Assembly (NCBI GenBank): GCA_010909165.1
Contig: MU008149.1
Span: 186,001-250,000 of the forward strand
Direction of reading: 5' to 3'
Length of the DNA: 64,000 bases
From: Anthoceros angustus
Lineage: Eukaryota > Plantae > Anthocerotophyta
This document shows, piece by piece, positions 1 through 61,800 of this stretch (position 1 is the first letter of the stretch; each line of letters starts with the position of its first letter). Below the pieces are notes generated by a model, which saw only the letters and a list, made by a program, of their open reading frames with translations, was not told where the DNA came from and made no database searches. Position numbers and translations under genes: made by a program.

Positions 1-615
1 ACATGCAGGTAATGGCACGTCCGAATTCCCCTTGCTTCCTTCTGCATGCATTGCTGCGAGCTCGGCTATGGTGGAAGCACGCTCTTGTTTCATTCATTCG
101 CATTTGTTTCACCTCTCACACGCTCCTCTCCGCTCTGCCATGCTATGTACCACCAGATGCACATGTGGGGCCACGGCTCGCAGTACAGGAAGGGCCCGGA
201 ATCTCTCCGCGGGACGCAGCCGACAGCCAGGCTGCGCCTGCCGTGCTACTGCTGCCACCAGGGCTGCCGCAACAACATTGAGCACCCGCGGGCGAAGCCG
301 CTCAAGGACTTCCGCACTCTTCAGACTCACTACAAGCGGAAGCACGGGATGAAGCCGTTCGAGTGCCGGAAGTGCGGGAAGGCGTTCGCGGTGCGGGGAG
401 ACTGGCGCACTCACGAGAAGAATTGCGGGAAGCTGTGGTACTGCATCTGCGGCTCCGACTTCAAGCACAAGCGCAGCCTCAAGGACCACATCCGGGCATT
501 CGGCAAGGGCCACGCCGCGGGCCAGGGCAACGACTCCTGCGGCGAGGACGAGGAGGACGCCGCATCTGACGAAGTGGACGACGTCGACGACAACATGTCT
601 GCCGGATCCCAATAA
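1..615 (+). CDS. WIP: WIP-family C2H2 zinc-finger transcription factor (TT1/NTT-like), 3' part; exon <1-8, intron 9-156, exon 157-615
   Basis: Spliced MQ|[19 protein letters not shown]...[77 protein letters not shown] is the WIP domain; GT at 9, CAG ending 156, TAA 613-615. Confidence 0.96.
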
Positions 616-2408
616 CACTCACCTCGAGCTCGACCTCACCTCAGAGCCGCCACTTCGACTCCGACTCCCCGCCCTGTCTGCCACCAACACACTCTCAGGT
701 CCGTGTTTGTACATGCCAGGGACACGCTTTAGAGTCGGTTTGTAGCACGCAGTCGTCCTCTCCATCTCTAGAGACTTCTGCTGCCCCGACTCTCTGCAGA
801 CTCGTGCTGACTTCACTTCTCCATCTCTTCTCAAGTAGTAGACCACCCTTCTTCGTGCTTTGCTTACTTATATTCATGGGCGATCCTCGCATTGCTTCTT
901 TATTCCTTACCTTGCCTTGCTCTTCCCTGCACCCTCGGCTTCCCTTTGCCGGGGGATGGGAAGCCCTTGTTATATACACCTCACCTGCTAACGCCCGCCC
1001 GCCCGCAGCGTCCTTAGAGTCGCTCCGATTCAGGTTAATTTGACCCCTTGGTTCCAGAGTTCCCCTCTCCTTTTTGCGGTCCGAGCCATGGATGGGTTTT
1101 TGCGCAGCTCCAGCATGTTCCCCGGCCTCCCTCCAACAAAACAAGCAGGCAGGTCGGATGAACGGGCTGGTGCAACTTTTTTTGTCCCGTTCTTTCTCTT
1201 GTTCCAGCCAACAGACAGGGCCGGTCCGGTGGCTGGAGCCCGCGGGTCAGATCTGGTCCTCCGCGTGATCATGTCCATGGATGGACGTGGATGGATGGAG
1301 TCATCAGGAGGCTCAGGATGGCATGCGTAGGATTTAGATGACAGGCTCCAACACGGAACTTGAAGGCTGGCTAGCAGGCTTTGGCCGACAGGAGCAGGCA
1401 GGGCGGGCCAGGGTAGGGACGCAACGTTGATGCGCGTCTCAACTTTCTTGGGTTGCAGCCGGCTGCTGCTGCCATAGCCGGGAGCTAGGACTGCCTCTGC
1501 GGGTCTCTGTGTTGGTAGCATTTGTAATTATATCACTAGAGTTGAAGGAAACGGTTCTCATTCGTACCGTAAGTGACTTCAAAGTTGGTGACTCTTACAA
1601 TTTGCACAGTTCTTTCGTCTTCCATTCTAGACCCTTCCTCCATCCCTCCTTCCTTGATGTGCTTGGACATGGACCTGGACCCCGCCCTAGAAACATCTAA
1701 CCGTATGTATCTACTGCAAAGCCATCTGGACTTCCAAATTTTGTAAGCTTCCGGAAGAAGCAATGTGTTTTGCTCTATCAAGTTGGCTTTAAGTGCTTTC
1801 TTTCTCGTAGTCTCACGTAAGCGCCAGCCTCCGGTACAGCATCCAACTTGGGGTGCTTGCAGCGTCGATCGGTCACGCCTTGTCCCCTGCAGCGACGAGC
1901 AAGGCAGCATCTGCCTGCCGGGTGACGACGTATCCAGGTCACCCAGAAGCGTATGTACGATGTACACCGAGGGTATAAGGCGCACGGTGACGCTGATGAG
2001 GTGGCCGAGTGAAAACAACGTGGCTTGCGATGACCCGCACTGGGATCGGCAAGGCAGCGTAAGTACATCCAGAGTACCGTAAGCCAGGCCCAGGCGCAGG
2101 CCCTGGGCCTCGGCCATGGGGCTCCACCCTCGATCGCCATAGGCGGAGAGATGTATCCGTTTGACCAGTTCCCAGATTCGGATTTGTCGCAACATGGGGC
2201 TTGCGCACTGGGACAGATAGAGGCTTGCCACAAGATGCCCATAAAAACTGCTTCAAAGAATAACAGCAACGCTCGCTAGAGGCCGGTACATGACATTATA
2301 GGTAGCCACTGTAGCCAGCCCACACCCTTATTCTTTCCGACACACCTCGACAGTTGTATTCCAACTGCTGGGGCCTCCCGGGGACGAGTTGCTTGCAGCA
2401 AAGCAAAC

Positions 2409-2520
2409 CCGGGTCCCGGGTCCCGGGTCCCGGCTCCCGGCTCCCCGCTCCCCGCTCCCGGCTTCGTAATCGGAATCGGAATCGGAGGCAGAGGCGGAGG
2501 CGGAGGCGGAACCGGAACCA
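2409..2520. repeat. Compound GC-rich microsatellite (CCCGGGT/CCCGGCT, AATCGG, GGAGGC, GGAACC units)
   Basis: Short tandem units read directly. Confidence 0.85.
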
Positions 2521-2699
2521 CACCCTATTTTCCATATTTCATGCAAAGTGATGCAGGGTGTGGCAGCCACAGACTGGGAAGGAAAAAGAATCGGCGCTGC
2601 TCGGCATCCTGGCGATAAAGGGCTCGCCCCACTGGCTCCTCCCTTCCCGAAATGGATCTGATCCGCGATGTGGGGCCGCCTCTTCTCTTTCCCAGAGGT

Positions 2700-2742
2700 C
2701 CTCTCCCTCTCCCTCTCCCTCGCCCTCGCCCTCGCCCTCGCC
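2700..2742. repeat. (CTCTCC)n/(CTCGCC)n hexamer microsatellite
   Basis: Read directly. Confidence 0.85.
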
Positions 2743-5667
2743 GGCCAGGGGCAGAGCAAACCAAACCCTAATCCGGGATTTGGCATTTATGAATGTGGCA
2801 TTAATAATATTATGGACCTCCAAACAGGAGTCGGCTCCAGACAAGGGGCTGGCGTCAGCAGGACGATGTTAGCTTACGGACAGATTTGGTGATGGCGCGG
2901 GCGGGTTGTTGGAAATCCCAACCTGAAGCTGGAGTCTGGACAGTGGCAAGGGCAAGGCACTGGAGACAGCCTTGGGAGCTGACACACACGCTTAGCCAAT
3001 GATTTGGAGGCGGTGGTCACATAGCGGCAGACTGCATTGGCTCTGCTGCTGCCCAAAGCGTGCTGGCTGGCGGGTTTGCTATTTCAAGAGGTTGGATTAG
3101 AGCAAGGCCAATAGTGTGTGCACAGGGCTTGCAGGAGATGTGAGCGGGACGCGGGAAAGGAAGGTTCTTGCTGTAACCTGCTTCCAAATCGCGCTTTATT
3201 TTGTCTGTGGCGGGAACAGGTTGACTCTCGTGGCTTCACGATCTCCTCGTATCCGCCAAACCCACCGCCGGCAGCATTGACTGGCACTGGCAGCCGTGTG
3301 TTTGTGTGATGGCTCTGTACAGCTGTTGGAGGAGGGTTTTTCTGTTGGTGTGTTGATTTTTGTGTGTTCGGCTGTGTTGTGTGGGGGGAACTGGGACTGG
3401 GAGAGGAAGGAGGAGCCCGATGGTCCCGCCCTGAAATAGCAAAGCATCCTTCCCGGCGGTTGCCAGCCTCTATTCTTGGCCCTGCCGGCCTGCATCCCGA
3501 GCCAGCCCAGACAAGACACACCCACAGTGCCAGATTGGGTTTACGTCGAGTCTGCGAGCTTCACTCTCTGTTCAGTAAGTGAAGGTGCTGTCCTGAGTGA
3601 CCCCCCTAGGCCTGTTTCCTCTTGCCTTGCCTGTCAGGGCCTCCGAGGAAAGGGCACCAAAGGGGTCCATGGTCATCAGGTCAGGACTGAAGGCTAGGAC
3701 TGCACTCTCCTTTTATGACATGGGTTCTGATGAGAATCTCTGGTAGGACAGAGCAGGCCCCATCACAGGCCGAGAAAGAGGAGGAGAAGGAGCAGGAGGA
3801 GGAGGAGGTGGCGTAGGAGGAGGAAGCTCCGGAGGGTAAGGCTCTGGCTCTCCATCGAGTATGTACATTATGTACCATGTACTGCCGGTTGCTGGAAATG
3901 GGGTGGCCTTGTTTAGTAGATAGATCCTTCTCCGGAGAGTAAATGCACCGACTCAAAGTCAGCGGATGGCAATGAATGCTGGGGTCACGCGGGAGACGAG
4001 TGACGGCTTCTGTATCGGGCATGGCCGACCCCGCCTGGTTCTGGTGCTGGTCAAGGGAAGTTCAAACTTCAAATTCATCAGCTCAACTGCTTTAAATCCT
4101 GCTTATGCGCTGTCTGAGGGTTGACTCTCAGGCAAGGGAGCCACGGCTGTGATAAAGCTTGGTGCCCGGGCTTCCGGAGAAAAGAGAGCACGAGATCATG
4201 ACAAGAGATTTGGTACGCGCCATGGCTCACCATCATTGGCACAGCAGAGCCTCTGACAGGAAGCGCTTTGGAGCAGCCTCCTCTCTCTCTCCTTCCTGTA
4301 GGAGCAAGCTGGCAGACGCCGTAATCCACTGTAAATTGTGACCATTGTTCCCTTTGCTACTGCAGGCTGGCTGGAGTTGTATTCTCCTGTTGTAGCAAAC
4401 GGTCTGTGCTTGAATTGCATCCCATCGCATTTATATATGTATGTGTGGTGGGTTGTGGTGGAGATTTTGTAGGGGGGAGAGAGAGATGGAGGTCCGAGGT
4501 GGTGTCTGTCTGCAGCTTGCCTCTCTGCAGTCCCCTTGTGCTCTCTCTCCACTCCATCAGATTCCTGCTTACCAAGAATAATAACCTGGCAGGGGGCAAG
4601 CTGGGCAGGGCAGGGCAGGGCAAGCCAGGATGGTATGCAGGTTATAAACGCTCCTGGAGTGAGCATGCCTTCCATGCTGCAGCAGCAGCAGGTAGCAGGC
4701 TACGGAATGCATAAAATAATCGCAACTTGCCAACTCCCCGCCTTGTCTTATGCAAGTTGCAGGCATGCTTTAGGTCAGCTGCCATTTGGACGTGGCATCC
4801 ATGTCCCATGACATCTTGACATATATCTATGTGCACATGAGTGGCGAGGCCCAGGGTACAGGTAACTGTGCAACTGGAATCCCAGAACATGGTTGGTTGA
4901 TGATATCACCTCGCACAGGCTCCACCCAAGCCACTGCAAACACATCGTACAGTACAACAGCAACTGGACACACGAAAACGAGTGCCCTTCGGGTACAAGA
5001 CACCAGCAGGTCTTACAACAGCAAATGGACACACCTCGGGAAAAAAAAGGTGGCATGAGGTACAAGACACACAAACACAGCGCAGAGCCCGCAGAGCACG
5101 CAGAGCCCACAGAGCCACAGACCTGCAAGCAAGAGCAAAGACAAGGCAAATTCAGGCCACGCCCTGCCACAGCAGTCTGTGCACCCCAGCTTTTGCAGCT
5201 TTGCAAAGGCAAGGGTGCAATCATCCATGTGGGAGCGGCAGCACATTGCCACATACAGCCCAGCCAATGCAACACAAGGTGATTCGTGAAGGACAGACAC
5301 TAGACCGTCACAGCATCACAGCGTCATCAGCACAGCTCCAGCTGCTGCTGCACGCTTCCTGGACTTGTCTGTTAGGTAACGAAAACAGAGGCCACCGTAG
5401 AGCCCACACTCGAGAGCTAGCCTCCCTGCAAAACGGAGAGGGGGAGTTTGCAAGGCCTGGTGAATCATGAGTACGCCGGATGCCAAAGCCTGCCCGGGCC
5501 TACACCCATTAATGTTTGACCTAGGCTGTGCAGGAGCAGCAGCAGCAGCGCCATTTGCTCCGCTTTCCCGGCCAGCCACATTACTGGCCTCCCCTGATGC
5601 CCCGCCTTAAAATAAGGCCCGCTTCAGACACGCCCCTCTTTCCGGCTTCCCTCTGCCTGCCCCTGCC

Positions 5668-5730
5668 TCCGCCTCTGGCTCTGCCTCTGCCTCTGCCTCT
5701 GCCTCTGCCTCTGCCTCTGCCTCCCTCTGC
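5668..5730. repeat. (CTCTGC)n hexamer microsatellite
   Basis: Read directly; source of the PLPLPL / EAEAEA pseudo-ORFs. Confidence 0.9.
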
Positions 5731-6716
5731 CTGGCCCAAGTCAACTCCCCGCCATCCCTTCCTGCCCTCCTTCCATCCAGGCTCAACTGCCCCCACCAAC
5801 ATGAGGGCCAGAATATCAGGCCATGGCCCTCCACCCCCCGATTCTGGCCGCTCCCCCGGATGGATAACCCTAACGCACGGTCAGGCCTGCCCAGGGCAAA
5901 GTGCAATGGCGATGGCATGCGGGAACACGCCATCCCTGCACATCGTGTGTTCACAACTTCACATCCAGAGCCATACTCCACCTTTACTGTTTGCCCACCC
6001 ACAACAGAAAGCGAGCAAAGCAAAACAACGGCATGCGAGACAAGACATTCCCTGTCACCTCCGAGTCCAGTTACAGTGCCAGTCGCCCCCGCCCCCGCCC
6101 CTCCGTGCGCGTGAACGGGGCGGGGCCACCGCCACTGCCAAAATCGAGGAAGAGCCAAGGGCTGGCCAGATTCGTGCAAAAGCTGCCGGGGCCAGGGGCA
6201 GGCGAAGAAAGCCGAAAAGAAATGGCAGTCGGGAGTCCGAAAAGAAGTGTCGGCAACGGGGCCTGTTCCGTCCCGTTGGCCGCGACTGGCAGCTCGTTCC
6301 TCACGAGGCTCTTTCAGCGCCCCCTCGGGCAGCGTGCCGGCCTCGGGCCCCGGGTAGCGCGAGACGCCACCGCCACCGCCGCTAGTGCTCGCTTCTTGTC
6401 GGCCATGCCCATCCTCTTTTCCCTCTCCTCAAACTAGTGATGGTTATGTGCCTGCCACCATGGCCATGATACAGATGTACATAACTCGTACGCCGGGTTA
6501 ATATGCAACCGGTACAGCCCCAATCATGGGCAAACCCCTGCCTGGTAAATGTGAGACTCGTACGGGTTTTGGGTTCTTGCCTCATAATATGTATGGTACT
6601 CTCACTTCTTTATGGAAGCATGAAAGACTTGGGGTGGAGCAACTGGAGCTGACTGCCAAGCAGTGCCTCTTCTCCACCAAGACGTTGCCAGCTTCATATG
6701 AGTTTTGTAGGCCATA

Positions 6717-7618
6717 ATGAGCAATAAACAACAGAAGCATAGATACAGTCCTGACTCTTCGGAATATTTTTCTGAGGATGATGCTCTCCACTCTCCCATA
6801 GGTGTGCATGTTGTGATTTTATCTTAAAATAATGGTCTTGTCGATTATAGTACTGTATTCCTATATTATATACATAGAATACAATATCCAACTACTGTAA
6901 AATATGATTGGTGAGTTCCGTAAATGTTTTACAGGTGAGAACCCTGAGACCGGAGAAACAAACGTGTGGAAGAACTTGAAGGAGATTTTTGAAGATCTTG
7001 ATTCGCACAATGACAAGTACATTACACAATGACAAGTACATTAGTACATTGCGTTCTCGGATTTGATCATTTATGATCTATCTCTGCTTGAGAATAGTAC
7101 ACTAAACAAAAGCATTGTAATGTACAGAGGTGAAAACAAGCTCCTATTGGAGAAGCAAATTCTACAGCTACGCCGTTTACTACAAATTCACAATGAACTT
7201 TGTATCCTCGATATCTATTGTGGTCTTGTCATTTAGATTGTAAAGAATTATTGGGAACATGAATTATTGCTTTTTTATCATAAAAATGATATTCCTGAGA
7301 GAATATAGTGTTGGAAGAAGATGCCATAGAGAAAGCCCATCTTGGTGTGCTTTATGAAAGAGAATGGTATTTGCGAAAGCTGCAAGCTCTGGAGGTGATC
7401 ATTCACTCCTTCAATTTTTTAGTGCAAAAGAGACAATCTTAAATTTTGAAATTAATATCATTGATTTTATGCATTTTGTACAGGTAACCATTGGTCCTCC
7501 TCTTCCTTCTCAACAAAAGCAAATTGGAAGTGGGAAGAATAGGTTAGCCAATTTAGCCTTCAATGAAGCTATAAGGGCAATTTTATATGAGCCTCATGAG
7601 AGCATGAAGTCAGCATGA
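6717..7618 (+). CDS. Small five-exon gene (~150 aa): coiled coil + EB1 C-terminal (EBH)-like motif, no CH domain. Exons 6717-6801, 6935-7016, 7128-7201, 7309-7394, 7484-7618
   Basis: Four GT-AG introns (133, 111, 107, 89 bp) with phases 1,2,1,0 give one open frame: MSNKQQKHRY...LLLEKQILQLRRLLQIHNELLLEEDAIEKAHLGVLYEREWYLRKLQALEVTIG...NEAIRAILYEPHESMKSA*. ERxWYxxKLxxLE...IxxILY resembles EB1 ERDFYFxKLRxIE...IxxILYAT. Upstream exons are possible. Confidence 0.68.
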
Positions 7619-8460
7619 CTACTTTTGTAAAATGTCAACAAAGACAAATCTTAATTATGTGGAACACACTACCTATATGAAAGTTAGGAATAGTTTATTG
7701 CATCACCCTCCATAGCATCTTCCAACTAAATCCCATTGTGAGTAGGATTATTGACTATTTGTGGACAAAATAAAGAGATGTATGAAACTTGAAACATGCT
7801 ACATCTTTTAGGATCATGAAAATCTCACTTGAGGATGTAACAAAATTACGTTTCCACTAATCTATAAATATACATTGCTCCATAATTTCTGAGTGTATAT
7901 CTGTAAACATATGACGATTTATAGTGAACTTTTAAATTCTAATTGCAATTTCATGGAATCATGATGTGACAACATTAAGCTTAAATTTTCTTGACAATAG
8001 GTCTTAAGATGCTACATACAAAGAAGTACCACGTGATGGGAAGGGAGATATGGAATTTCAATGTTGAGAATAATTATCACATCAAAATATTAACTTGATA
8101 AACTAACTTTACTGAAAAAAAGTATGTATGTGTTGTATGTGCAACCCTTCATCACTTATTGGCATCTTAATGTAGATGCAACTGTGAACCTATTGGTTTT
8201 TAAAAATATTTGCTTTAGTGCATGACTTGAATTTTTTAAGCTCAAGCGCCGGTCTTGTGATTTCATATATAGTGTTTAGGAAAAATCACCAAAAGTAATA
8301 GCAATAGATAATTATAGTTTTTATCATGAATAAAACTATGTAATGTATAATAAATCAAAGCTAAAGTAGAATATAATCTTATCTTCCATGACTGGCTGGC
8401 CCGCCTATCAATGGAATTCCTGCTTCAGGTTGTATTACTTGATCAGCTCAGGAGAGTAGA

Positions 8461-8713
8461 GAATGCTTTCCTGGCTCCGGCCCAAACACTGAGCGGGAGA
8501 GCCTTCCCTTTCACAAACATTGTGAATGTGAAGGTGAGGTAGACGAAGACGAAATTTCTCATTATGGGCATGGACATTAACGCTGACATATGCTGTATGA
8601 AGTGCGAGAAAACTCTAGGTTGGAGGTATGAGAAGGCTTACGAGGAATTGTAGAAATACAAGAAGGTCAAGTTTATTATCGCAAAGGCTAACGTTATAAA
8701 GGAGAACTGGTGA
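8461..8713 (+). pseudogene. Intronless Yippee/YPEL-like pseudogene, copy 1
   Basis: LSGRAFPFTNIVNVKVR*...ADICCMKCEKTLGWRYEKAYEEL*KYKKVKFIIAKANVIKENW*; two in-frame stops and first CxxC deleted. Confidence 0.88.
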
Positions 8714-9579
8714 CAACAAAAGCGATTAGCCAATTTAGCCTTCAATGAAGCTATAAGGGCAATTTTATATGAGCCTCATGAGAGCATGAAGTCGATGACT
8801 ACTTTTGTAAAATGTCAACAAAGACAAATCTTAATTATGTGAACACACTACCTATATGAAAGTTAGGAATAGTTTATTGCATCACCCTCCATAGCATCTT
8901 CCAACTAAATCCCATTGTGAGTAGGATTATTGACTATTTTGTGGACAAAATAAAGAGATGTATGAAACTTGAAACATGCTACATCTTTTAGGATCATGAA
9001 AATCTCACTTGAGGATGTAACAAAATTACGTTTCCACTAATCTATAAATATACATTGCTCCATAATTTAAAGTGTATATCAGAAACATATGACGATTTAT
9101 AGTGAACTTTTAAATTCTAATTGCAATTTCATGGAATCATGATGTGACAACATTAAGCTTAAATTTTCTTGACAATAGGTCTTAAGATGCTACATACAAA
9201 GAAGTACCACGTGATGGGAAGGGAGATATGGAATTTCAATGTTGAGAATAATTATCACATCAAAATATTAACTTGATAAACTAACTTTACTGAAAAAAAG
9301 TATGTATGTGTTGTATGTGCAACCCTTCATCACTTATTGGCATCTTAATGTAGATACCCTGAACCTATTGGTTTTAAAAATATTTGCTTTAGTGCATGAC
9401 TTGAATTTTTTAAGCTCAAGCGCCGGTCTTGTGATTTCATATATAGTGTTTAGGAAAAATCACCAAAAGTAATAGCAATAGATAATTATAGTTTTTATCA
9501 TGAATAAAACTATGTAATGTATAATAAATCAAAGCTAAAGTAGAATATAATCTTATCTTCCATGGGCCGCCCCTATCAA

Positions 9580-10650
9580 TGGAATTCTCGCCTTGAGTTG
9601 TATTACTTGATCAGCTCAGGAGAGTAGAGAATGCTTTCCTGGCTCCGGCCCAAACACTGAGCGGGAGAGCCTTCCCTTTCACAAACATTGTGAATGTGAA
9701 GGTGAGGTAGACGAAGACGAAATTTCTCATTATGGGCATGGACATTAACGCTGACATATGCTGTATGAAGTGCGAGAAAACTCTAGGTTGGAGGTATGAG
9801 AAGGCTTACGAGGAATTGTAGAAATACAAGAAGGTCAAGTTTATTATCGCAAAGGCTAACGTTATAAAGGAGAACTGGTGACAACAAACAGTCGGCAGCC
9901 AATGGTGGACTATTTTGTATACATGAGCTCGGACAAAGAACTTGCTTGAGCCGGCCCAAAAATCTCTCTTCCTCAAAGTTAGTGTAGAGCAGGATGTATG
10001 TTTGTCACATATCAATTATTAGAAGTAAAGAGGGTTTCGATTGCAGTTGGCAACTGCATGTTTCCCAACTATGTCGTATTATTCTAAGCATCCCTGTATG
10101 TTGTGATGACATCTCTCATACAATTTTTTTTTTACTAAAGGAGAACAATAGTGTCAAATGCTTTCTTATGTAGCAAATTTGCAAAACATAGTCAAGTATA
10201 AAGCATTGGAACTCGTCTACCTTGGTTGCATGGCTTCCTCCTAATGGAATTAGGGATTTCAAATTCCCAACTTGAAACTTCACAAGGTGAGGTATGGAAG
10301 CTTGGGAAAGCTCCAGCACAAACTGTGCCTAATTCAGAGGCACCTAGGTCCATTTCACCCTAGTTTCGTTGGGTTTCAATTCGTCTAGTTTATGCAAACG
10401 TCGTAAGATAATCAAACAATATCATGTCGCATTGCATGTAGCTGAGTCATCTCTAATCGTTCGTCTAGTTAATCGAACCGCTACAAAATAATCGAATGAT
10501 ACTATGTCACATTGCATGGAGCTGACTCATTTTAAACCATTTTTAAGCTAATCCTAGGTATCATGCCATGTGGCATTGAGATGATTGAATTTCAACTGAC
10601 ATTCTTAACCTCATTCAACGAGTCGTAGATTCGCATCCAGCTCCCTTAAA
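9580..10650 (+). repeat. Dispersed ~1.1 kb repeat (Yippee copy + 3' flank + CTAG-rich array), homologous to 22308-23547
   Basis: Shared blocks such as GTGGACTATTTTGT, GACAAAGAACTTGCTTGAGCC, GCTTGGGAAAGCTCCAGCACAAAC, AACTGACATTCTTAACC in the same order. Confidence 0.88.
9629..9881 (+). pseudogene. Intronless Yippee/YPEL-like pseudogene, copy 2 (in the tandem duplicate)
   Basis: Same sequence and stops as 8461-8713. Confidence 0.88.
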
Positions 10651-11075
10651 TCTATCCTGATATATAGCTGTAGTCAAAGGAAAGTAAAATGCCAGGGCGA
10701 GAGCACACAAACCCAGGAACCCAAGAAGCGGCCATCGAAGGCATGCACACCATGGGTACTGGCCGGCATTGCGGCCTGCTACACAGCAGCAATGCAAAGA
10801 CCATTGGTACATGGGCGCCGACATGCTAGCAACACTAGTACCAGTCCAGGTACCATACGTGGTACAGGCGCGGCGTGCACGAAACACATTTCCATGGGCG
10901 TCGGCATGCCGGCAATACAATATACATGAGCTGCATGCCGACAACACACTAGTACAAGAGCGCGGGCATGCGGCACCACTGGTACCCGGGCGCCACCATG
11001 CCGGCGCCCACACACGAGGGCAAGGTGAGGACTCGGGCGTGCCGGCTCTCACTGCTTCCCACGACCTTGCCACAC

Positions 11076-12120
11076 TTAGAGGTTAATGTGAATAAGACAA
11101 TGGGCTTGGGAAGTCCTACCTTGATCACTGCGAGCGTCTGTGCTCTGTATGTTGAACTTCAATCCTGCGCATAATGAACAAGTCGAAAACCTATTGGACT
11201 TGGGTACCTTCGCACGTTTGAAGTTCTGTTCCCAAAGCCGCAGAAAGTAGGCACATGAAATAAAATGCTGTCCCTTCTGCTCCATTTTCCGTTTGTACCG
11301 TGTCCAAACCTCTAGCTTAGTGATGTGTCTGGTAAGTTATACATCTCCATGTTTGGGCAAACGCTCTACCAAGTGGATGAATGTAGAGTCCATCCACGCA
11401 ATCACACCCAAAGCATGGGAGGATTGAACCCGAGTACTCTGCTTGTTCTCATCCCATGGAGCATTACAAAGTACCCTCCTATTCAATTCTTCATATCGTG
11501 CAAAGCGGATACAGTACACCCGTCAGAAGGCTTTCAGGCAAGATCTCATTGAAGCATCACCCATTAGATGGGTTAAGACTCCATGTCTTGAATTGGCCTC
11601 CAAATCTGATCTAACAAGAGACTGGACAGCCTCTCCACCACTAGCATTTCCATTGAACAGACCTCCGACTGCTTGCACAGTCTGTTCACCATTGTCCTGC
11701 CGTACACTCCCTACCACAGGACTTCTATCCATTGCAGTGTAGAGATTCATATTTCTTGGAGTGGGAGGAAGGAAGTGAGGCACACTAGACGACTGATGAG
11801 TCCTCCTCCACCCTGGACCATGCCCAAATGCCGATGAAGAGAATGTTTTCCAAACACCACCGGCAAGACGAAGTGCAACTACCTATCATCCGAAGCCTAT
11901 GTGCAAGACGCTGCAGCTTAGAAGCGAACAGAGATTTCAAGTTCAGAAGTGCTGGGCTGTCGACGTTTCTTTGAGGAAGACCAAGGGGGACTGTTTACTG
12001 CATAATTTTCAGAAACCATGTTGCAACAAATTGTGCATCCAATTGTTGACCAAAGGAGGCTTTCAAGAGCAGCGGGACATGTTCCCGAGGCTGAGCAGGC
12101 CGGCCCAGGAAACACAGTAA
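11076..12120 (-). mobile_element. Degenerate DNA-transposase remnant (CxxC-containing, DUF7869/CMC-like), internally rearranged
   Basis: Minus frame with stops: CLKAF*RVYCIR...WMDSTF...LP...TKLEVWTRYK...SCAYFLRLWEQNFKRAKVPKSNRFSTCSLC; a CCNKLC...QRDMF..LS segment lies on the opposite strand (11899-12120); family from recalled motif pattern only. Confidence 0.55.
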
Positions 12121-17977: not shown

Positions 17978-19158
17978 TCATGTGCTTGTCAATAGTGCTG
18001 CCTCCACCTGCCTGATCTTGGAAGCGATGGACAGATCAATGTGTTTGTCCCGGATATCAACCACAAACCCACCGATGATGCTCCTGTCCACCTGTTGCTC
18101 AAGGTGAAGAACTTGACCAGGCTCAAGCCATCCCTTCAACACATCCTTTAACTCTGCAAGCTCTGTATCCGACATTTCCAAGGCAGCTGTGACAGTAGCT
18201 TTGACCTCCCCCTTGTGTGCAATCAGAAGCTCAGAGTAACTGTCCACGGTCTTGTAGATCTCCTTCAGCCGTCCGTATTCTGCTAGAAGATTAAGAAAAT
18301 TCTTGGTGATATCAGAGAACTCTGACTTGCTGAAGCACTCCTGGATTGCCTTCACTCGTCTCTCTGGAGGGACAGAAGGGTCCTTGATGAACTCTGAAAA
18401 CGTTGGGCTGGATTTGGCAGCCTCTACGACCACCTTCAACTCCTTCTCCACGGGCTCCAACATCTGATTTTTGGCAGCGACGACAAACAATGCAGCGGCA
18501 TACTTTCCAGCAACTCCATGTACCTGTATCGGTATCTGCCCTAGTGGAAAACGTCGGCTTCAGAGGATGTCTACCTCATACCACAGGCCACTAAAACAAC
18601 TGCGAAACACAAATGAGAACAAACGAAGGCCAAACCGGAATGTGTTGGTCCGCATCGGAAGCAAATGCTCTTGCCACCTGCATGAATCCAACATGAAAGT
18701 GTTCATTTCCGTGGCAAAGTGCCTGCAAGTCTTCATGACCAACTGCAAAGCTTCAAGACAGCTACAACAGGCCAGCTCCATAAGCCCCGTCGCCAAAACC
18801 AGACCTATGAACAACCGCGCCTGAAGTGCTCAAGGCTATCACTACGCGATCAATCCAACACCCCCTCCTGCTGGGAGCTCAGATCTTCATCTAAGAGACA
18901 TGGCACGACGTTTGGCTGCTCCGCTAGGTTTCCCTGGAGAAATACCGGAAGCGGATGCTGCTTTCCAGGTTCCAGACATCCATGAACCCACTTCATTCTC
19001 CAGAATCCTCCATGCTCTGCTCGTAAGGAGGATCGCAACTTGCAACAAACCAAAGTTAGGTGAACTGAATTACGTGCCTGGAAGGACGACGCGTGCCCCG
19101 CAGTCTGGGCCTGCAAGTGACGCCTCACAGCAGGGAAGGCCCGCCGCAGCGACCACAT
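17978..19158 (-). CDS. ATP5: Mitochondrial ATP synthase OSCP (subunit O/delta); last exons 18677-18636 and 18523-17978, presequence exon from 19158 (intermediate splicing uncertain)
   Basis: VARAFASDADQHIP|VHGVAGKYAAALF...FIKDPSVP...NFLNLLAEYGRL...HKGEVKATVT...VDRSIIGGFVVDIRDKHIDLSI; Arg-rich MWSLRRAF.. presequence. Confidence 0.95.
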
Positions 19159-25633: not shown

Positions 25634-28600
25634 TCAGCCAGTGTTGCGCATACCAGCAGCAATACCGTTGATGGTGATGAGTAACGCATCTCTCAACTTC
25701 GGATTGGTCTCATCCTGCCTCAGACGGCGCAAAACCTCCACCTGGAGCATGTTGATGGGATTGAGATAAGGCAGCCTGCTTTCAATCAGGCGACGCAAAG
25801 TCTTGTTATTCTCCGATAGCTTGTGGTGGCCAGTGATATCCCGCACATGCTTCTCCGTGACATGGAACTCATCACGCAACTCTTTCCCAAGCTCTCGCAC
25901 ATTTTGCGAGACAAGCACATCCTCATAATGCTTCGTTATAGGCATATCTGCTTTAGCGAGAACCATCTCAATCAGGTCCACTGTTGACTGGAAGAATGGC
26001 CACTCCTTGTACATGGCCCTTAGCTCGTCCCTGTGCCCCTTCTCCATAGCTGCCTGCAAGCCCTTACCCACACCTAGCCAAGCCGGGAGCACAGACCTAG
26101 TCTGCGTCCAGGCGAAAATCCACGGGATAGCTCGGAGCTGTGTGATGCCTCCACTGCTCTTCCTCCGGGTAGGCCGACTTCCTATGTTCAGGTTCCCCAG
26201 CTCAGCTTCAGGTGTAGCTTCGTGGAAATACTGCAAAAACTCCTTCGTTTCGAACACAACATGGCGGTAGTACTTCCGCCCTGCATCCGAAATTTCGTCC
26301 ATCACAGTTCTCCATGCAGCAGAGCGTGGTGGCACCGGGGGGTGCACAGTTGCCAGAAGAACTGCCGTTGTATATATCTCAAGCTGTCGGATAGCTGTCT
26401 GGTTCAATCCAAATTTAGCTTGGATCATCTCTCCCTGCTCCGTGACTCGCAACGTTCCCTGCATGTTGCAATTTCAACAGTTAAACTCCCACCATTCCCA
26501 TCACACAACTGTTCCAGAGTCGAACGAACAAGAACCAGCTAGACCGCGTACCATGACGGAGCCCGGTGGCTGAGACTGAATAGCAAGGTACATAGGCCCT
26601 CCACCTCGTCCTACACTTCCCCCACGCCCATGGAAGAGGGTGATCTTGATGTTATACTCCTTACAGACAGCCACGACATCTTCTTGCGCTTTGTACAGTT
26701 CCCAGGCAGCCGTGAATCGTCCAGCATCTTTGCCTGAGTCGGAGTATCCGAGCATGACCTGGAGGATTTCACAACTGTCAGCATTATGGCAGAAAGGAAA
26801 CGAGAGTTAGGAAAAGGAAGTCTCTCGAAAAAACGGCATGGTTTGGCACCTCCTGATGGGATTGATGATTGGCAATGAGATGCTCTCTATACCAATCAAG
26901 GGACAGGAGCTTGCGGATAACATTTCCTGCATCTCTCAAGTCGTCCACCGTCTCGAAGAGCGGGACCACACGCAAGCTGTCACAGCACAAAAGGGCTGTG
27001 ATCTTAAGCCACACGATCTTGAACTTCCGCGTACACATCATTGGCACACAATGGGACACAAAACCGAGGTCCAGAAAAGACTTACGTAGTGCCGGGCAAA
27101 CTTTTGCCCAGATCTCCCGAGACTGATAGCCGTGCCTCCTTTTGTAGGAGCTCCACAGCTAGTACGTCACTTGCCTGCAGACGTGAGTTAACATCAACAG
27201 TTAAAATGGGAACTCCTCCAACCATTAACCCAACCTGTCCCAGTTAGTGTACGGAAGGTATCCCACCTCATGCGCCATGGAAATAACGTATGCCCCGAGA
27301 GAGCTGGAACCGAGTTCTGCTGCGACGCGGAAGGTTGCCAAGACTTCTCTGACTTCCGGTGAGACCTGAAAAATCCCAGGCAGCGGCCATCATGGTGGTG
27401 GTTAATGCCAAAAGTATGCGGAGGCGCATGTCAATCAAGAGCATGGTGCGGGTCAGGAAATGTCAAGCAAGATCAAAGACATGTACCTCGATAGTCGGGG
27501 GGATAAGGGGCCTTTTGCCTTTAAGCTCCGTTGTAAGGAAATCAAGCTTCTTGTCCTCATCCCAATCACTGTACTTGCCAATGTCTAAGAATGCTGTGAT
27601 AGCATCCAATGCTTCCGCATGCTTGTCAGACTCCTGGAAAATGGAATCGCCCAAGTTTAACCATCAACACGGGCTCTGGCAAATAACCAGCAGGGCCTAG
27701 TAGGTTACTTAAAGCTTCAATTTTATACCTGTCGTAAATCAAGTTTCATCAAGGTCATGCCGAATGTAGTCACATTCCTGATGAGATCAGCGAGATGCCC
27801 ATCAGCTAACACCTGTGATCCACGTGATTCCTGCAGAATCACAGTAATCCTGTGTAAGAGGATGCTTGTCATCTAGCAAACATACAGAGAGGAGTGATTG
27901 CTGCAGCACATACCAGAGACTTGTGGCACAGAAGTAAAACATCCAAGAGTTTCTCTTCATTTTCGTAGTACTCGTCCGCCTCGAAGTCAGATGGGAGACC
28001 CTCCAGAAGATTCTCTGCTCTGCGTCTTGTATTCACAAGCTGCAAGCCAAATGTACGTGTCAACTACTTTCCTCCAAAGCCAACAGTTGCAATAAAGTCA
28101 CTCACGCAGCTTGCACATACCTTTGACCTTATGTGCCCTAAGACGACCCTGTAGGGAGCAATGTCTGGCCTTCCCCCTGCACTTGGATTTAGGAGCTTGT
28201 CTACACTTGATGGCAGGTTCGCTTCGGAGGCGTTCCTCTTCTTGAACACTGAAGTAGAGAAGGATGTTCCAGATGGGTGTCTGGGTGAAGGTGCCGCTTC
28301 ATTTGATGAATCAGCATTCCCGTTTGCACCGTTCACATGCACTGCACCATTTCCATTAAGCTTCGGAGACAACGATGGGGAATTGACCTCTGGGGTAGGC
28401 GTGCCGTCTGTGTCATTCTGGCCAGACAAAGGGCAGAGATCCATGCAATCATAAGTCGACAAGCTCCCGTAGTGACAAGAAGAATCCACTAAAACTTCCA
28501 CGAGCACAAGACCATTCATGTTTAGAGGATCTACCAAATGCAAGGCTGCAAGGTTCGGTATCGCTATGATAGGAGGAACTGATACACCATCCGATGGACC

Positions 28601-38611: not shown

Positions 38612-40444
38612 ATGGCAGAAGAAGAGGCAACTGGTAGCAGCAGCCAGGAGGAAGGCTTGTATAAGCCATTCCTTTCCAAGCCCTCTATAACAGAGGACGT
38701 TCCTGTCGAAAATGCTTCTCCTGATCATGGCTTCAATTATGGCACAAGGCCGTGGAAGGATATCCCGTTCCTTGTTCTCTTTGTGCTTGTTTGCCTTGCC
38801 AGCATTGGACTTGGCATTTTTGCTATTGTGAACCACAACCCTGATTTCTTCCACGACGCACAGTTTGATAAAAACCAAACTTGTCAGGTTGTTAACAACT
38901 CCCCAGGATTGGAGTCTCGTACCCCGTACAGCAGCATTCTGGCCAAGACTGGATTGAGGGATGGGAATGACGATTTGTTTTTGACAGCTTTGATTTCCTC
39001 TGTGGTTGCGACTCTGATTTTGAGCGTGCCGTTGGTATGGGGACTTTTATGGCTGCTCAGGAATTACACCAAGGAGCTTGTGTATGCAAGCTTGCCTTTC
39101 CTTTTCTTTGCCCCCGTCCTGCTGAATATAAGCTGGTTCATTTATTGTCTGAATGATACGGGGTGCCAGGAGGCCTTCCTTCTTTCTTATAGAATAACTG
39201 CGTTTGTTCTCATTTTTGTTTTCTGCGGGTTTCTGCTGTGGGTGATCTGGGCCGCCCGCAGTAGTATGGAATTAGCCATTAAGGTTATTCGAACCGCATC
39301 TGAGTCTCTCAACAAGAACTTGGATCTTTTATTTGTGTTGCCTGGTCTGTTCTTGTCTTTTGCGGTCTACTTCATTGCTCTCGTCGTCTTTGCCTTTTTT
39401 GCTTATGCGAATGGCAAGGTCGTTGTCAGTTCTCCCGATGTGCACATCTCGGATCCTTGTATCTGGAAAGTGCAAGGCTGGGTGCCTGCCTACCTGGCTT
39501 TAGCTGTGGTGGCCCTGTATTGGGCCACCTCAAATATTGAAGAGACACAAAGCTATGTGATTGCTGGTACCGTTTCTCAGTGGTACTTCGCACCTGCCAA
39601 CTCTCCTGTCAAGGGAGCAACAAGGAGGTCCTTAGGGTAAGTCTGGGTGGACAACAAGGGTTAACCTGTGTCAGGCACATAATGCAGCCCAATTTTCTTA
39701 CACGCACTTATACTCACACACTTGTCGCCTGTTCTGTTGTACAGGCATGCATTTGGTCCTTCTTCTGGGACAATCTGCTTTGCTGGTTTGATTCTTGCCA
39801 TAGTACGGATGCTCCGAGCAGCTTCTCGCAATGCAAGACATGATCGAGGACAAGAAGGGCTTCTGTCAATAATTGTCCGGTGCTGTCTGGAGCTCATATT
39901 GCGCATAGTAGAATTTCTTACCAATTTTACCATCACATTCTCAGCCATCACTGGAGAAGAGTTCTGCAAGTCAGCGCACAGGACCTATGATTTGCTGAAG
40001 AGGAACGCCTTGTCTACACTGTATGTGGACTCCGTGGCAGGAAACCTCTTGGGGTCAATTGTATTTGTGACAACAATTGTTTTCGCTGCTGTGGTAAGAA
40101 TAGCAAGTGATATCTTTCAGAACTTGTTTCACACTGAAGTCGCTGTCCATCAATGTATTGCTGATAAGCTTCCCTCCGTCTTTCAGGTGTTTGGGGTTCT
40201 ATACCTTCTGACGGATCTTCAATCAGGAGCTGCAATATCAGCTGCTTTCATATGCTGGTTGATTCTTGTCTTTGTTCTCACTCTGTTTGCCAGGGTTTTG
40301 ACAAAGACAGTGGATACAGTTTATATATGCTATGCTTTGGATAAAGACTCAGGATATGTGTCAAAGGAGGAGGTTCATTCTGTGTACTTACTGCTCCCAC
40401 CAGCACAAAATGAGCCACCATCTCTTGCAGTGGCCCAACCTTGA
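38612..40444 (+). CDS. Choline transporter-like (CTL/SLC44) membrane protein; exons 38612-39636, 39745-40093, 40187-40444
   Basis: R.WKDIPF, about ten hydrophobic helices, YVIAGTVSQWYF, AFGPSSGTICFAGL, AITGEEFC.SA...Y.LLKRN, DTVYICYALD. Confidence 0.93.
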
Positions 40445-51327: not shown

Positions 51328-52578
51328 TCAGGGGGCAAAAACCTCTGAGTGGGGACGTCCAGTCCACGTCATGGGAATGAAAGGAAGCAGGGGCTGGAAG
51401 TTTTCCACGTCGAGGGGACGGGCCAGAAAGTGGTCCCAGGTCTCCTCCTTTACTTGATAACCAATCAAGCAAGAGGTTGGGTAGTAATAGTCGGAGGGAA
51501 GCGGATCAGTATCCAGGGTGTCTGTGAAGGTGATGATGATACAGCCGTAAGCGCCCGTGACAGAGAGAAGCTTGGGTTCGTCCGGCTCGTATATGATGTC
51601 CATCAGGTTTGTCGGACAGTATCCCAGGCAACTCCATGACCAGGTTTGCAAGTCAAGAAACCAGATGGCCAAGCCGTAGCCGTCTTCAGGCGCGCCGACC
51701 ACATACAAGCCACCATCCAGCTCGACCCAATCGATAGGCCAGGGGGAGGGCAGATGAAGGTCTATCACAACCCAGGTGCACTCATGTAAGCAAAAACACA
51801 TGAGCCCCAAGCCGCTCTGGTAATATAATTTTCCTCCTACAAGCACAGGAGGCAGTTGTCCGCCTTCAAAAGCAACATCCGCCACTCTGCATGTGTCCTC
51901 ACGAATGTCGATAACCGCCACCCTACCTGGAATAATGGCAACCAGCTGGTGACCGGACATGAACACAGCCGTCAGCTGGACGTTGTGATCCACTCTGAGA
52001 GGGGTTAAGGTTAACCACTTTGAATCCAGCGGGCTGAGGATGTGGAAAGTCTCCAACCAGCCGGGACCCTGGCCTCCAAGGTTTACAGATCTGATTGGGA
52101 CTTCAAAGTCCTGCTCCCTTTCTCTCAAGCTGAAGAAAAGGGTCCCCTTGAAACAACCATGGCAGACCAAGGGGATGTGAAGTGCCGGGAAGGGCACCCT
52201 AAACTGGCTACGCTGGAGACACCAGTCGTGGCCAAGGAGGGCAATCTCGTTGTTACCCGCCACTGGTGCCTTCAACGACAGGAAGCAGACCCGAGGTTTG
52301 ATGTGCATATTAGGATCCATCAGCATCACTCGCCATGCCTTGCATACAAGCATACACACAACATAATCCTTGGCAGACAATCTCTTCAACACCTCAAAAA
52401 TCAAATTTTCGTCCAGGTTTCTCCATATATTCTCCTCCATCTGATGGACTCTAAATCGATTGTTGTTCCTTGTCCCATTCTCCTCTCTCCGAACTCCATA
52501 TTTGGTGGTGTTTGATCTTGTTCCGTCCGTCCACATAAAAACAGTCTTCCGATCAACCCAATCCTTCGAATGCGACAT
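51328..52578 (-). CDS. Intronless F-box protein with degenerate kelch/beta-propeller-like C-terminus
   Basis: IWRNLDENLIFEVLKRLS......CMLVCKAWR F-box; PPVLVGGKLYY, VELDGGLYVVG, IWFLD...WSW; first ATG at 52578 (ORF track starts at a TTG). Confidence 0.85.
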   Translation of the reverse strand: MSHSKDWVDRKTVFMWTDGTRSNTTKYGVRREENGTRNNNRFRVHQMEENIWRNLDENLIFEVLKRLSAKDYVVCMLVCKAWRVMLMDPNMHIKPRVCFLSLKAPVAGNNEIALLGHDWCLQRSQFRVPFPALHIPLVCHGCFKGTLFFSLREREQDFEVPIRSVNLGGQGPGWLETFHILSPLDSKWLTLTPLRVDHNVQLTAVFMSGHQLVAIIPGRVAVIDIREDTCRVADVAFEGGQLPPVLVGGKLYYQSGLGLMCFCLHECTWVVIDLHLPSPWPIDWVELDGGLYVVGAPEDGYGLAIWFLDLQTWSWSCLGYCPTNLMDIIYEPDEPKLLSVTGAYGCIIITFTDTLDTDPLPSDYYYPTSCLIGYQVKEETWDHFLARPLDVENFQPLLPFIPMTWTGRPHSEVFAP

Positions 52579-52689
52579 GATGATATTTGCTTGTGCCGCC
52601 AACCTGGTCAACTTGAGCTCCCAGCACTTCCTTGTGTACAGTTTCCGCGGCCGCGCTCAATGCTTCCACTTCCAGTTAGGTCAAAATAT

Positions 52690-58800: not shown

Positions 58801-61800
58801 GAAAAGTGCTTTGCACAATGCTTTGCCTTAACTCCTCGAACACAACTTCCAGTTTTTTCATAAAGGCACCGTCTGTGTGACAATTTTGGAGAAGCACCCA
58901 CCTGTATCCGATGTCCTTTACATAAATGGCTTACATTGCTACTGTGTTGTGAACAAAAAGAAGTAAATGACAATCATAGTTATTGGGAGCTTCTGCATAC
59001 TCACTTTCCCCATTGGGCTGCTTCTTTGATAGCCTCCACTACCTTATGCCCCTGCGTGCACACGACCCAACATTCATAGGCAAGTGAGCACGGACTTAGC
59101 TTTCCAGCAATTGGGTTTCGACAAACAGCAGAATATGAACCTGGCAGTGGTCCAGAGAGAACACCCACAGCTTCCGGAGCATGCTCTGGCGCTTAGCAAA
59201 ATCTAGAATCTGCATCACACGATTTCAATTAAGTAGCAGGAATCTGTACGTTCGTGAAGCTACAATGACTTGTTACCTCTTCTACTGGGGCAGACACATT
59301 GTCGTGAATACAAGTGATTGGAATATCCATATTTGATTCTTCATACGCATCCTCAACTGTAATAAGCCCTTCATCTTCACTGGCAAGATTTAGAACTTCT
59401 CTCACCAGATTTTGAATAGCCTCAGCCAACTGCTCACATAGTTCAGTACCAACACGTTGTGAGTCCACGCAACTGGACGCTCACTTTATTGATGTAGTTT
59501 CATGTTGAAGCATCGTGAGGCTAAGAAACTGCACACAAGGCTTAGGCAGGCAGAAGAGGAGGAGGACCAGTACCCTATCAGGCCGTAGACAACGTAGTAC
59601 AAGTAGAGACCTGAATGCCCCAATTTTGTTCCTCCAAGCTGCAGGTATTGAGGCAAATGATTTGGACAGATAGAATTCTTTCCAGGGCCTGGCTTTCAGG
59701 TCTTCGATCAGTCCTTTAAAACTGTCAACAGGATCATGCCACGAAATCTCTTAGCTATCAGCAGCCTCCATGCAACAAAGCGGGGCAGGAAGCTGCCACA
59801 ATCACCTGGGAAACTTTGATAGATGGCAAAGCTGTTTCCACTCAGTGGACGTTGACTTTAACCATGAAGGGCATCGCTCATCAGAGCACGTTGGAGGACC
59901 CCCAGTGTCCCCCCGGAGCAAAAACATCCACTCGTCCTGGCACACATCTTGTCTCGTTTGTGCTATCCTGTAGGGTTGCAGGTAACAGTCCAACATTGAA
60001 CCTATACTCGTTCTGTGATGTGTCAGGCTGTACACCAGATTTAATTTGAGGTATAGTGCATCCTGAATTCACCTGAACGTAATGAGAAGTCCAAATAGGA
60101 GACGATGCCTCTGCAAGAGGCTACTGCTGACTTGTTTGTAAATCGCAGAGGTGACCTTATGTATTAGATACGTTATCCTCGTTTCTAGCTCAACTGGATT
60201 CAAGGATGATGTTCGTTGCATGCTTTTGCTGTACGCAGTTTTGAACCAAGGAAGAGTCCACTGGTAAATGGGTTCAAGCTGCAACACACAGGCTAAGGAA
60301 GTCAGAATGGTGGCTATCCCCTACAACCCTTCTTGCCATGAGAAGTTGAAAGAGTCCCAGCAGAACATCATCTTTTGAATCTTACACATATTTGATGCAA
60401 TGACACTTCACAGTCAGCTCTGAGAGTTAAAAGACTGATTTCACGACAAATTGAGCAGAAACAGACGAATAGAAACGAAGTACTTTAGCCACATCGGCAA
60501 TGCAGGAGTACAAAGTCGTCGCCCTTTCTGCAATGGGCTTGTATCGTCGTCGTATGACTTCAATCACCTTCTCAGTTGAAGCTGCCTTTGTCATCCTCGT
60601 CTGGAAAAGTAGAAGCATCCCGTCAGCAAACACATCAATCATCTACAAATTCGTGGCCTCAGTTTCATAATTTGGATAGAACTCTAGTCATATGTGACTA
60701 ATTCATTTCCTCTTTTGATGTATGATACGTATTCTGAGTGGCCTCCCCACAGTCTGTCTCCTTTAACTTTCACTCTCCCAATTTCCCCGCCCCTGCACTC
60801 TTGTGTAAGATAGCTGGAGTACCTGGATATCAGCATATGTAGCTGTTGCCACCGACAGCGCTTGTTCCAGGGCCTCGTTGTCCAGAATAGTTCCCTGTTT
60901 AGCATATTTTGGAGCTTAGTGTACTTAAAGTAGTACTGGACGTCCCTGTAACACAGTTCTCGTGAGCAGGAAGAGATTGTTTGGGAAGCCTAGCCCACCA
61001 TTACTCCCTGAAGGAGTGTTAGAATATGATTCTCCACTTCATGAAGCTTGCAATTTAAGGCTAGCCGTTGATGCAGTAGGCGATTCCTTTCCTCCTCAAG
61101 GTCCTGCCTCTCTCTTTCAGCGGCTGAAAGCATAAACTCTATTGTAAGGGACCGTTGACGTTCACAATTGCAGAATACTTATCTGACCAGCGAAGTCACA
61201 CTCTGAAAGCAAAGCTACCCTGTTGTGCCTTGCCATTTTAAGCAGAGATCAACAGCGATTTGTATGGCTCACCAATGGAGAGAAGCTGACTGCATAATCC
61301 GCGGAATGTGATTGAAAAATCCACGATGTTCAAACTGATGCCCGCCTGCAGGTATGCCAAACTTATGCCCTTGAGGATTCCCACACCATATGTGTTCAGT
61401 TGTTAACAAGCCCCTTCTACTCAACCACTGTGCTCCAGGACTATGTACCTCATCAGAGCACTTAAATCCTGCCTCAGTTGTCAAGAAAATGCACCGGCAG
61501 TCTGATGAAAGCTTGCAGTGCTGTTTTGAAGGTTCCATGTTAGGAGAGTCAGTTGATCGGCCTTTCCGCACAGTTGTGATCCGATGTAGGAGACCGGGGG
61601 GTGTGAAACTCCCTACATTCTCGACCAGCAGCAGTCCATCTTCTACGATACAAGACTCAACCTCCTCAAGAAGTTTTTCTGAGTTTGCATCGACAGTTTG
61701 GACACCATAGGGGTCTTCCAGTCTACGAATCCAGTTGCTAACTTGCTTTTGGGGATCCAGAACAAGAGCTGGACGAGAACTGTTACACACAATGATGGCA

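Follow-up and report, generated by a model that had tools for sequence, protein, structure and literature searches.

Analysis of a 64-kb window of hornwort DNA, the whole stretch considered here, points to a small intron-bearing gene on the + strand at 6717-7618, whose five exons splice into a predicted product of 153 aa. The explanation that we prefer, tentatively and at a little under an even chance, is that this is a live, lineage-restricted small nuclear gene of the hornwort that would derive from the C-terminal half of an EB1/MAPRE gene. Two strands of evidence carry this reading. The composition and codon periodicity of the exons and introns, which control chains rarely or never match, bear on the reality of the gene, and the order of the parts encoded by exons 3 to 5, together with weak matches to the EB1 family, bears on its origin. 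Three other explanations, namely that there is no gene, that the gene is a coiled-coil gene unrelated to EB1 and that it is a decaying relic, are weighed below where the evidence on each of them is given.

Exon-intron structure and the predicted spliced product

The five phase-compatible exons that had been proposed for this locus were reproduced on the + strand by reading of the sequence and of the exon translations, and both the coordinates and the expected protein of about 150 aa were borne out. The exon lengths sum to 462 nt, giving 153 aa and a stop codon, all four introns run from GT to AG, and the codons split at exon junctions (GGT, AAA and TTG) include no stop. The splice donors of the chain are weak.

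Exon 1 (6717..6801, 85 nt) encodes MSNKQQKHRYSPDSSEYFSEDDALHSPI and the opening base of a Gly codon and ends at the donor GTGTGC; an A occupies position -3 relative to its ATG, and a TAG in the same frame is located at 6708-6710, 7 nt 5' of the ATG. Intron 1 (6802..6934, 133 nt, GC 0.29, T 0.40) separates it from exon 2 (6935..7016, 82 nt; donor AA/GTACAT), which encodes the acidic part ENPETGETNVWKNLKEIFEDLDSHND; exons 1 and 2 contain 13 D/E residues vs five K/R. Intron 2 (7017..7127, 111 nt, GC 0.33) is followed by exon 3 (7128..7201, 74 nt; donor T/GTATCC), encoding the heptad helix GENKLLLEKQILQLRRLLQIHNEL with a clean run of Leu and Ile (L..I..L...L......L), and intron 3 (7202..7308, 107 nt, GC 0.28, T 0.40) by exon 4 (7309..7394, 86 nt; donor GAG/GTGATC), which encodes LEEDAIEKAHLGVLYEREWYLRKLQALE with the EB1-like first motif and ends in LGVLYEREWYLRKLQALE, including EREWYLRKLQALE. 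Beyond intron 4 (7395..7483, 89 nt, GC 0.26, T 0.42), exon 5 (7484..7618, 135 nt including TGA) encodes VTIGPPLPSQQKQIGSGKNRLANLAFNEAIRAILYEPHESMKSA and the stop, with a Pro/Gly-rich loop that leads into an I..ILY helix followed by a short tail; AIRAILYE is found 10 residues before the stop, and the C-terminus of the product reads ...EPHESMKSA. The acidic N-terminus, the heptad helix, the exon 4 motif and AIRAILYE, all named in the preliminary description, can thus be seen in the exon translations. A possible poly(A) signal, AATAAA, is present on the + strand at 7769..7774, 151 nt 3' of the stop codon.

The end of exon 4 allows for a second gene model, which was raised because the EB1 scores reported below depend on residues read from intron 4. 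Translated in frame, the first 27 nt of this intron give VIIHSFNFL. With GTGCAA at 7422 as the donor, which is also in frame, these residues would be kept and the intron would be 62 nt long. The segment encoding VIIHSFNFL is T-rich and intron-like, and the exon 4 donor at the boundary given above leaves about 11 helix residues after WYL, about as in EB1.

Coding signal compared with chance

The simplest explanation of the locus is that it is no gene at all and that the chain was picked from AT-rich non-coding DNA by way of open segments lying between GT and AG. Searches for the longest GT-AG chain running from an ATG to a stop, with at most four introns, an intron length of 60-200 nt and a minimum exon length of 50 nt, lend this explanation some weight, since 30% of Markov-shuffled versions of 6600-7700 yielded a chain no shorter than 153 aa and the real sequence also allows a different, longer chain of 194 aa. 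The open spliced frame alone is therefore not significant. The contrast in composition, the richness of the introns in T and the codon periodicity, on the other hand, are not reproduced by chains taken from shuffled or from real sequence, and we regard the absence of a gene as unlikely.

These measures were compared with those of 256 shuffled models and of 205 real-sequence controls, the latter being the best spliced-ORF models at 1100-nt steps through the whole 64-kb window on both strands. The difference between exon GC and intron GC (observed 0.123) was reached by none of the shuffled models and by five of the 205 real-sequence models, the excess of T in introns over exons (observed 0.131) by none of either set (0/256 and 0/205), and the difference between GC1 and GC2 (observed 0.234) by 0/256 and 1/205, respectively. 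The frequency of G at codon position 1 (0.29) was reached by 0/256 shuffled models but by 23% of the 205 real-sequence models and is therefore a weak measure. Not one of the 205 real-sequence models came to 80% of all four measures together.

Within the chain, whose composition depends on both strand and frame, exon GC is 0.38-0.44 vs 0.26-0.33 for the introns, while intron T is 0.32-0.42 vs 0.21-0.27 for the exons. The GC1/2/3 values of 0.54/0.31/0.40 fall within the range of firmly Pfam-matched genes of the window, with 0.55/0.34/0.59 for the gene encoding the mitochondrial ATP synthase subunit OSCP and 0.55/0.44/0.42 for that encoding a dynein heavy chain. Since these composition signals are nearly absent from the control models, the exon-intron structure is taken as real, and that the five-exon stretch represents a real gene structure we consider likely. 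The proposal of a coding-like, intron-bearing small gene has accordingly held up against chains that chance can supply.

Regarding other genes, the window contains the last exon of the OSCP gene (17978-18487, - strand), a phosphoenolpyruvate carboxylase exon (25634-26461, - strand), an exon of a choline-transporter-like protein (38612-40441, + strand), an F-box protein exon (51328-52608, - strand) and a dynein heavy chain exon encoding AAA_9 and the microtubule-binding stalk (61269-62312, - strand).

Resemblance to the C-terminal half of EB1

The suggestion that the product carries an EB1 C-terminal-like module was followed up with Pfam and PDB searches run exon by exon, the curated cut-off of the Pfam family for EB1, PF03271, being 27 bits. 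Neither exon 4 alone (28 aa) nor exon 5 alone (44 aa) had a Pfam match even at E up to 10. Against the PDB, exon 5 alone had no match, and exon 4 alone matched only an unrelated complex I subunit (MWFE, E 1.3) and no EB1. Matches to EB1 arose only when 3-9 residues were read into intron 4 (..ALEVIIHSFNFL..). With this read-through, exon 4 scored 14.0-14.5 bits against PF03271 (E 0.047-0.064), covering positions 4-20 of the 41 positions of the profile, and in the PDB it matched Bim1 (E 0.2-0.5) and Mal3 (E 1.2), both of which were aligned at their ER[ED]FYFNKLR.IE[IL][LV] helix. Bim1 and Mal3 are two of the three best matches of exon 4 with read-through among 177,635 PDB sequences, and PF03271 is the sole Pfam family matched by any piece of the five-exon chain.

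As a yardstick, 5 of 10 junk ORFs in the GC-rich DNA upstream of the gene also have Pfam matches, at E 0.01-0.26. Because junk ORFs score similarly, the figures of the EB1 matches prove nothing alone, and the EB1-like motif taken by itself is at noise level. The joined product would, by estimate, probably still score below 27 bits against PF03271. The module thus fared unevenly: the order of its parts does mirror the C-terminal half of EB1, while membership of the family stays putative, with no Pfam match for single exons and 14.0-14.5 bits, vs the 27 of the cut-off, being attained with intron read-through.

Regarding the order of parts, the coiled coil runs straight into the EBH motif, in that the L/I heptad run of exon 3 is followed by ...LGVLYEREWYLRKLQALE in exon 4. 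This segment aligns with FGLERERDFYFNKLREIE of Mal3, and the motif is identical at 7 of 13 positions to the human EB1 motif. The I..ILY helix follows the first motif at a distance of 32 residues, and the stop comes 10 residues later; the distance between the two motifs in EB1 proteins is 19 residues in human and plants and about 42 in Bim1. Three residues important in the EB1 pocket differ in the product (F to W, F to L and R to Q), and given these changes its choice of partners may differ from that of EB1. This EB1-like order is suggestive only, but several EB1-specific features agree, including the family match, the PDB matches, the heptad, the I..ILY helix and the position of the end, and their agreement lifts the case above noise.

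Relatives in sequence collections

Searches for relatives of the product were blank. A word search with the 84-aa ORF containing exon 5 yielded no candidate, the search being confined to proteins of 46-147 aa, a range outside which products of 153 aa fall. Comparison of exon 5 with 1.84 billion representatives revealed no true relative; the single match, P0001, is an 894-aa protein made up of NLSWN.TLA..LYEP repeats and was rejected as a repeat-boosted chance match. A metagenome scan detected no relative of the five-exon gene, and ESM Atlas feature searches with the exon 4 ORF and with exon 5 returned unrelated clusters with few shared features and no EB1 cluster.

The reach of the collections was calibrated with the OSCP exon of the same window. 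Its closest match in a collection of 5.8 billion sequences has 76% identity and stems from the Logan run SRR33208241. The matching Logan contig measures 4.5 kb and is 72% identical at the nucleotide level; it is followed by liverworts at ~61%. The contig is short, not collinear with the window and has no neighbours in common with it. That OSCP has a best match of only 76% implies that the species and its near kin are missing from the collections; with close kin missing and a fast-evolving piece of 44 residues being undetectable at that distance, the blank searches for relatives of the five-exon gene weigh little.

The matches taken together might also be expected from a real small coiled-coil gene that is unrelated to EB1, the likeness of ER.WY..KL...E and I..ILY to EB1 then being due to chance in a helical protein rich in Leu, Glu and Lys. 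Such a gene would combine strong coding and intron signals with an EB1 signal at noise level, just as found here, and the complex I subunit as the best match of exon 4 alone, the many recurrences of ..ILYEP strings in the unrelated P0001 and the lack of EB1 clusters in the Atlas searches all speak for it. It is less easily reconciled with the order of the motifs, their EB1-like spacing, a heptad directly before them and a stop shortly after, all four of which are specific to EB1, or with the presence of both Bim1 and Mal3 in the top three PDB matches. We assign a low probability to this explanation. Descent of the five-exon gene from EB1 is plausible, though unproven, and, provided that the gene is real, the sequence features lead us to lean towards it.

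CH domain and upstream DNA

The product had been described as an EB1-like protein without a CH domain, and this architecture was upheld as far as the neighbouring DNA was covered. The 153-aa model contains no CH domain, no CH-like piece was recognised by eye among the open segments of 35 aa or longer on the + strand at 600-6716, and a Pfam scan of the 11 nearest upstream segments gave no CH match. The CH-less state is thus supported locally, that is, for the model and for 6.7 kb of upstream DNA on the same strand; a CH exon may be located further upstream than these 6.7 kb. Searches of the literature revealed no natural CH-less EB1-like protein, no EB1 microProtein and no genome-encoded stand-alone plant version, and the literature on EB1 in bryophytes added nothing on CH-less EB1-like proteins.

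The DNA at 600-6400 is GC-rich (56-63%) and of low complexity, with microsatellites of CCCGGCT, CCTCGC, GAG and CTGCCT, the last of these at 5657-5732, and with long spurious ORFs on both strands. At ~6400 GC drops sharply to 36-42%, marking the start of an AT-rich island which extends to ~10200 and in which the five-exon gene is situated. The nearest upstream gene on the same strand is represented by a C2H2 zinc-finger exon of the STOP2/IDD type (46-612, + strand), with GC3 of 0.83 and matches to PF23115 (E 2e-19) and PF22995 (E 8e-13).

Duplications and the neighbouring Yippee-like sequence

Two tandem duplications touch the gene. A perfect 19-nt duplication of CACAATGACAAGTACATTA (two copies, 7006..7043, + strand) spans the exon 2 donor and provides a second, identical GTACAT donor at 7036, which is 19 nt downstream, out of frame and past a TGA at 7030-7032; use of this donor would yield an out-of-frame, prematurely stopped message. 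The other duplication measures 1.18 kb and starts inside exon 5, with unit 1 at 7544..8722 on the + strand and unit 2, which is 98-100% identical to it, from 8726 to ~9880; the last 25 codons of exon 5 are repeated at 8726-8800. The sequence AGCCAAT is present at the start of unit 1 and recurs immediately beyond unit 2, which suggests that microhomology was involved. The 1.18-kb duplication must have arisen very recently, unless it is an artefact of the assembly, and both duplications could be assembly errors.

The 1.18-kb unit includes an intronless Yippee-like sequence (8411-8713, with a copy at ~9580-9880), whose open segment at 8543-8650 matches the Pfam family Yippee-Mis18 (E 9e-4). Its frame is interrupted by TAG stops at 8540 and 8651; at one of these positions Yippee proteins carry Gln (SQKYK). 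Given these two stops the sequence is regarded as a dead copy, and it is probably a dead retrocopy.

The duplications and the dead Yippee neighbour fit relaxed constraint, and such signs of instability may reflect weak constraint on a young gene or else damage done recently to a real one. They also bear on the explanation that the locus is a decaying relic, i.e., a duplicate of the 3' half of an EB1-type gene which is unexpressed and unselected and whose frame is open by chance. Besides the location of the gene in an AT-rich island next to an intronless pseudogene with two in-frame TAG stops, and the two very recent duplications at the exon 2 donor and inside exon 5, this explanation can draw on GC3, which at 0.40 is at the low end for genes of the window, and on the fact that relatives were not found in the collections searched. 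A split from EB1 would, however, be old, given how very remote the similarity is; in spite of this all 153 of the 153 codons are open, including 12 that are a single transition (C-to-T or G-to-A) away from a stop. Likewise, the splice dinucleotides are intact (8/8) and the periodicity by codon position is well preserved, whereas the neighbouring Yippee copy has two stops in 100 codons. We consider a relic distinctly unlikely, and a live gene derived from EB1 remains the preferred explanation. As to capture by a transposon, no inverted repeats flanking the gene were found in 5000-11500, and the window holds no second copy of 6400-7543; capture thus gains no support, though it stays conceivable.

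Proposed mode of action

Throughout the eukaryotes, EB1 proteins are the organisers of the network of proteins at the growing ends of microtubules. If the five-exon gene is derived from EB1, the parts retained from the ancestor would be a linker, the coiled coil, an EBH-like two-helix module and a short tail. Exons 3 and 4 would form a parallel coiled-coil dimer, and the exon 5 helix (..AIRAILYE) would, after a long Pro/Gly loop, fold back on the ..EREWYLRKLQALE.. helix, resulting in an EBH-like four-helix bundle. A protein without a CH domain would be unable to reach microtubule ends alone and would act through its dimer interface, either by pairing with canonical EB1, giving one-headed dimers with poor tip tracking, or by engaging partners elsewhere than at microtubule tips. 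For the 153-aa product, dimerisation and the binding of partners, like any role in biology, are matters that we infer only. That the gene encodes a natural headless EB1 derivative tuning the plus-end network, via poisoning of EB1 dimers or diversion of partners and possibly in cells that build sperm microtubules, is a speculation which we rate as very doubtful; none of the features observed points to sperm development.

Comparison with known systems

The closest point of comparison is the EB1/MAPRE family (human EB1-3, yeast Bim1, S. pombe Mal3 and the plant proteins EB1a/b/c), whose C-terminal coiled coil and EB-homology domain are covered by PF03271. Common to both are the succession of linker, heptad coiled coil, ER[DE]-aromatic-Y-x-x-KL-x-x-[IL]-E helix, loop, I..ILY helix, short tail and stop, and the weak matches of the hornwort product coincide precisely with the EBH motif in Bim1 and Mal3 and with positions 4-20 of PF03271. 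Unlike these proteins, the hornwort product has no CH domain, its score exon by exon is far under the family cut-off, its motif has WYL where EB1 has FYF and Q where EB1 has R, and its N-terminus is acidic, whereas the linker of EB1 is basic and rich in Ser and Pro. The loop between the two helices has 32 residues vs 19 in animal and plant EB1. The product also differs from animal and fungal EB1 in having no acidic EEY/F end; to our knowledge plant EB1 proteins do not have EEY either, and the absence of EEY/F therefore weighs little.

Plant microProteins of the LITTLE ZIPPER, MIF and KIDARI types are small proteins reduced to the module through which a larger, multi-domain family makes its interactions. 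The size of 153 aa fits this class, and the relatedness of the candidate to EB1, its supposed target, is putative; the known plant microProteins act on transcription factors, unlike a protein directed at EB1.

Engineered C-terminal fragments of EB1 and EB3 are used in cell biology as laboratory dominant negatives. The hornwort product would share with them the half responsible for dimerisation and partner binding, without the microtubule-binding head, although these fragments are laboratory constructs and differ in this respect from a gene present in a genome. As a mere lineage-specific coiled-coil gene or a relic, the hornwort locus would be ordinary; if it is expressed and derived from EB1, it would represent a natural regulator akin to the dominant-negative headless EB1 fragments of the laboratory.
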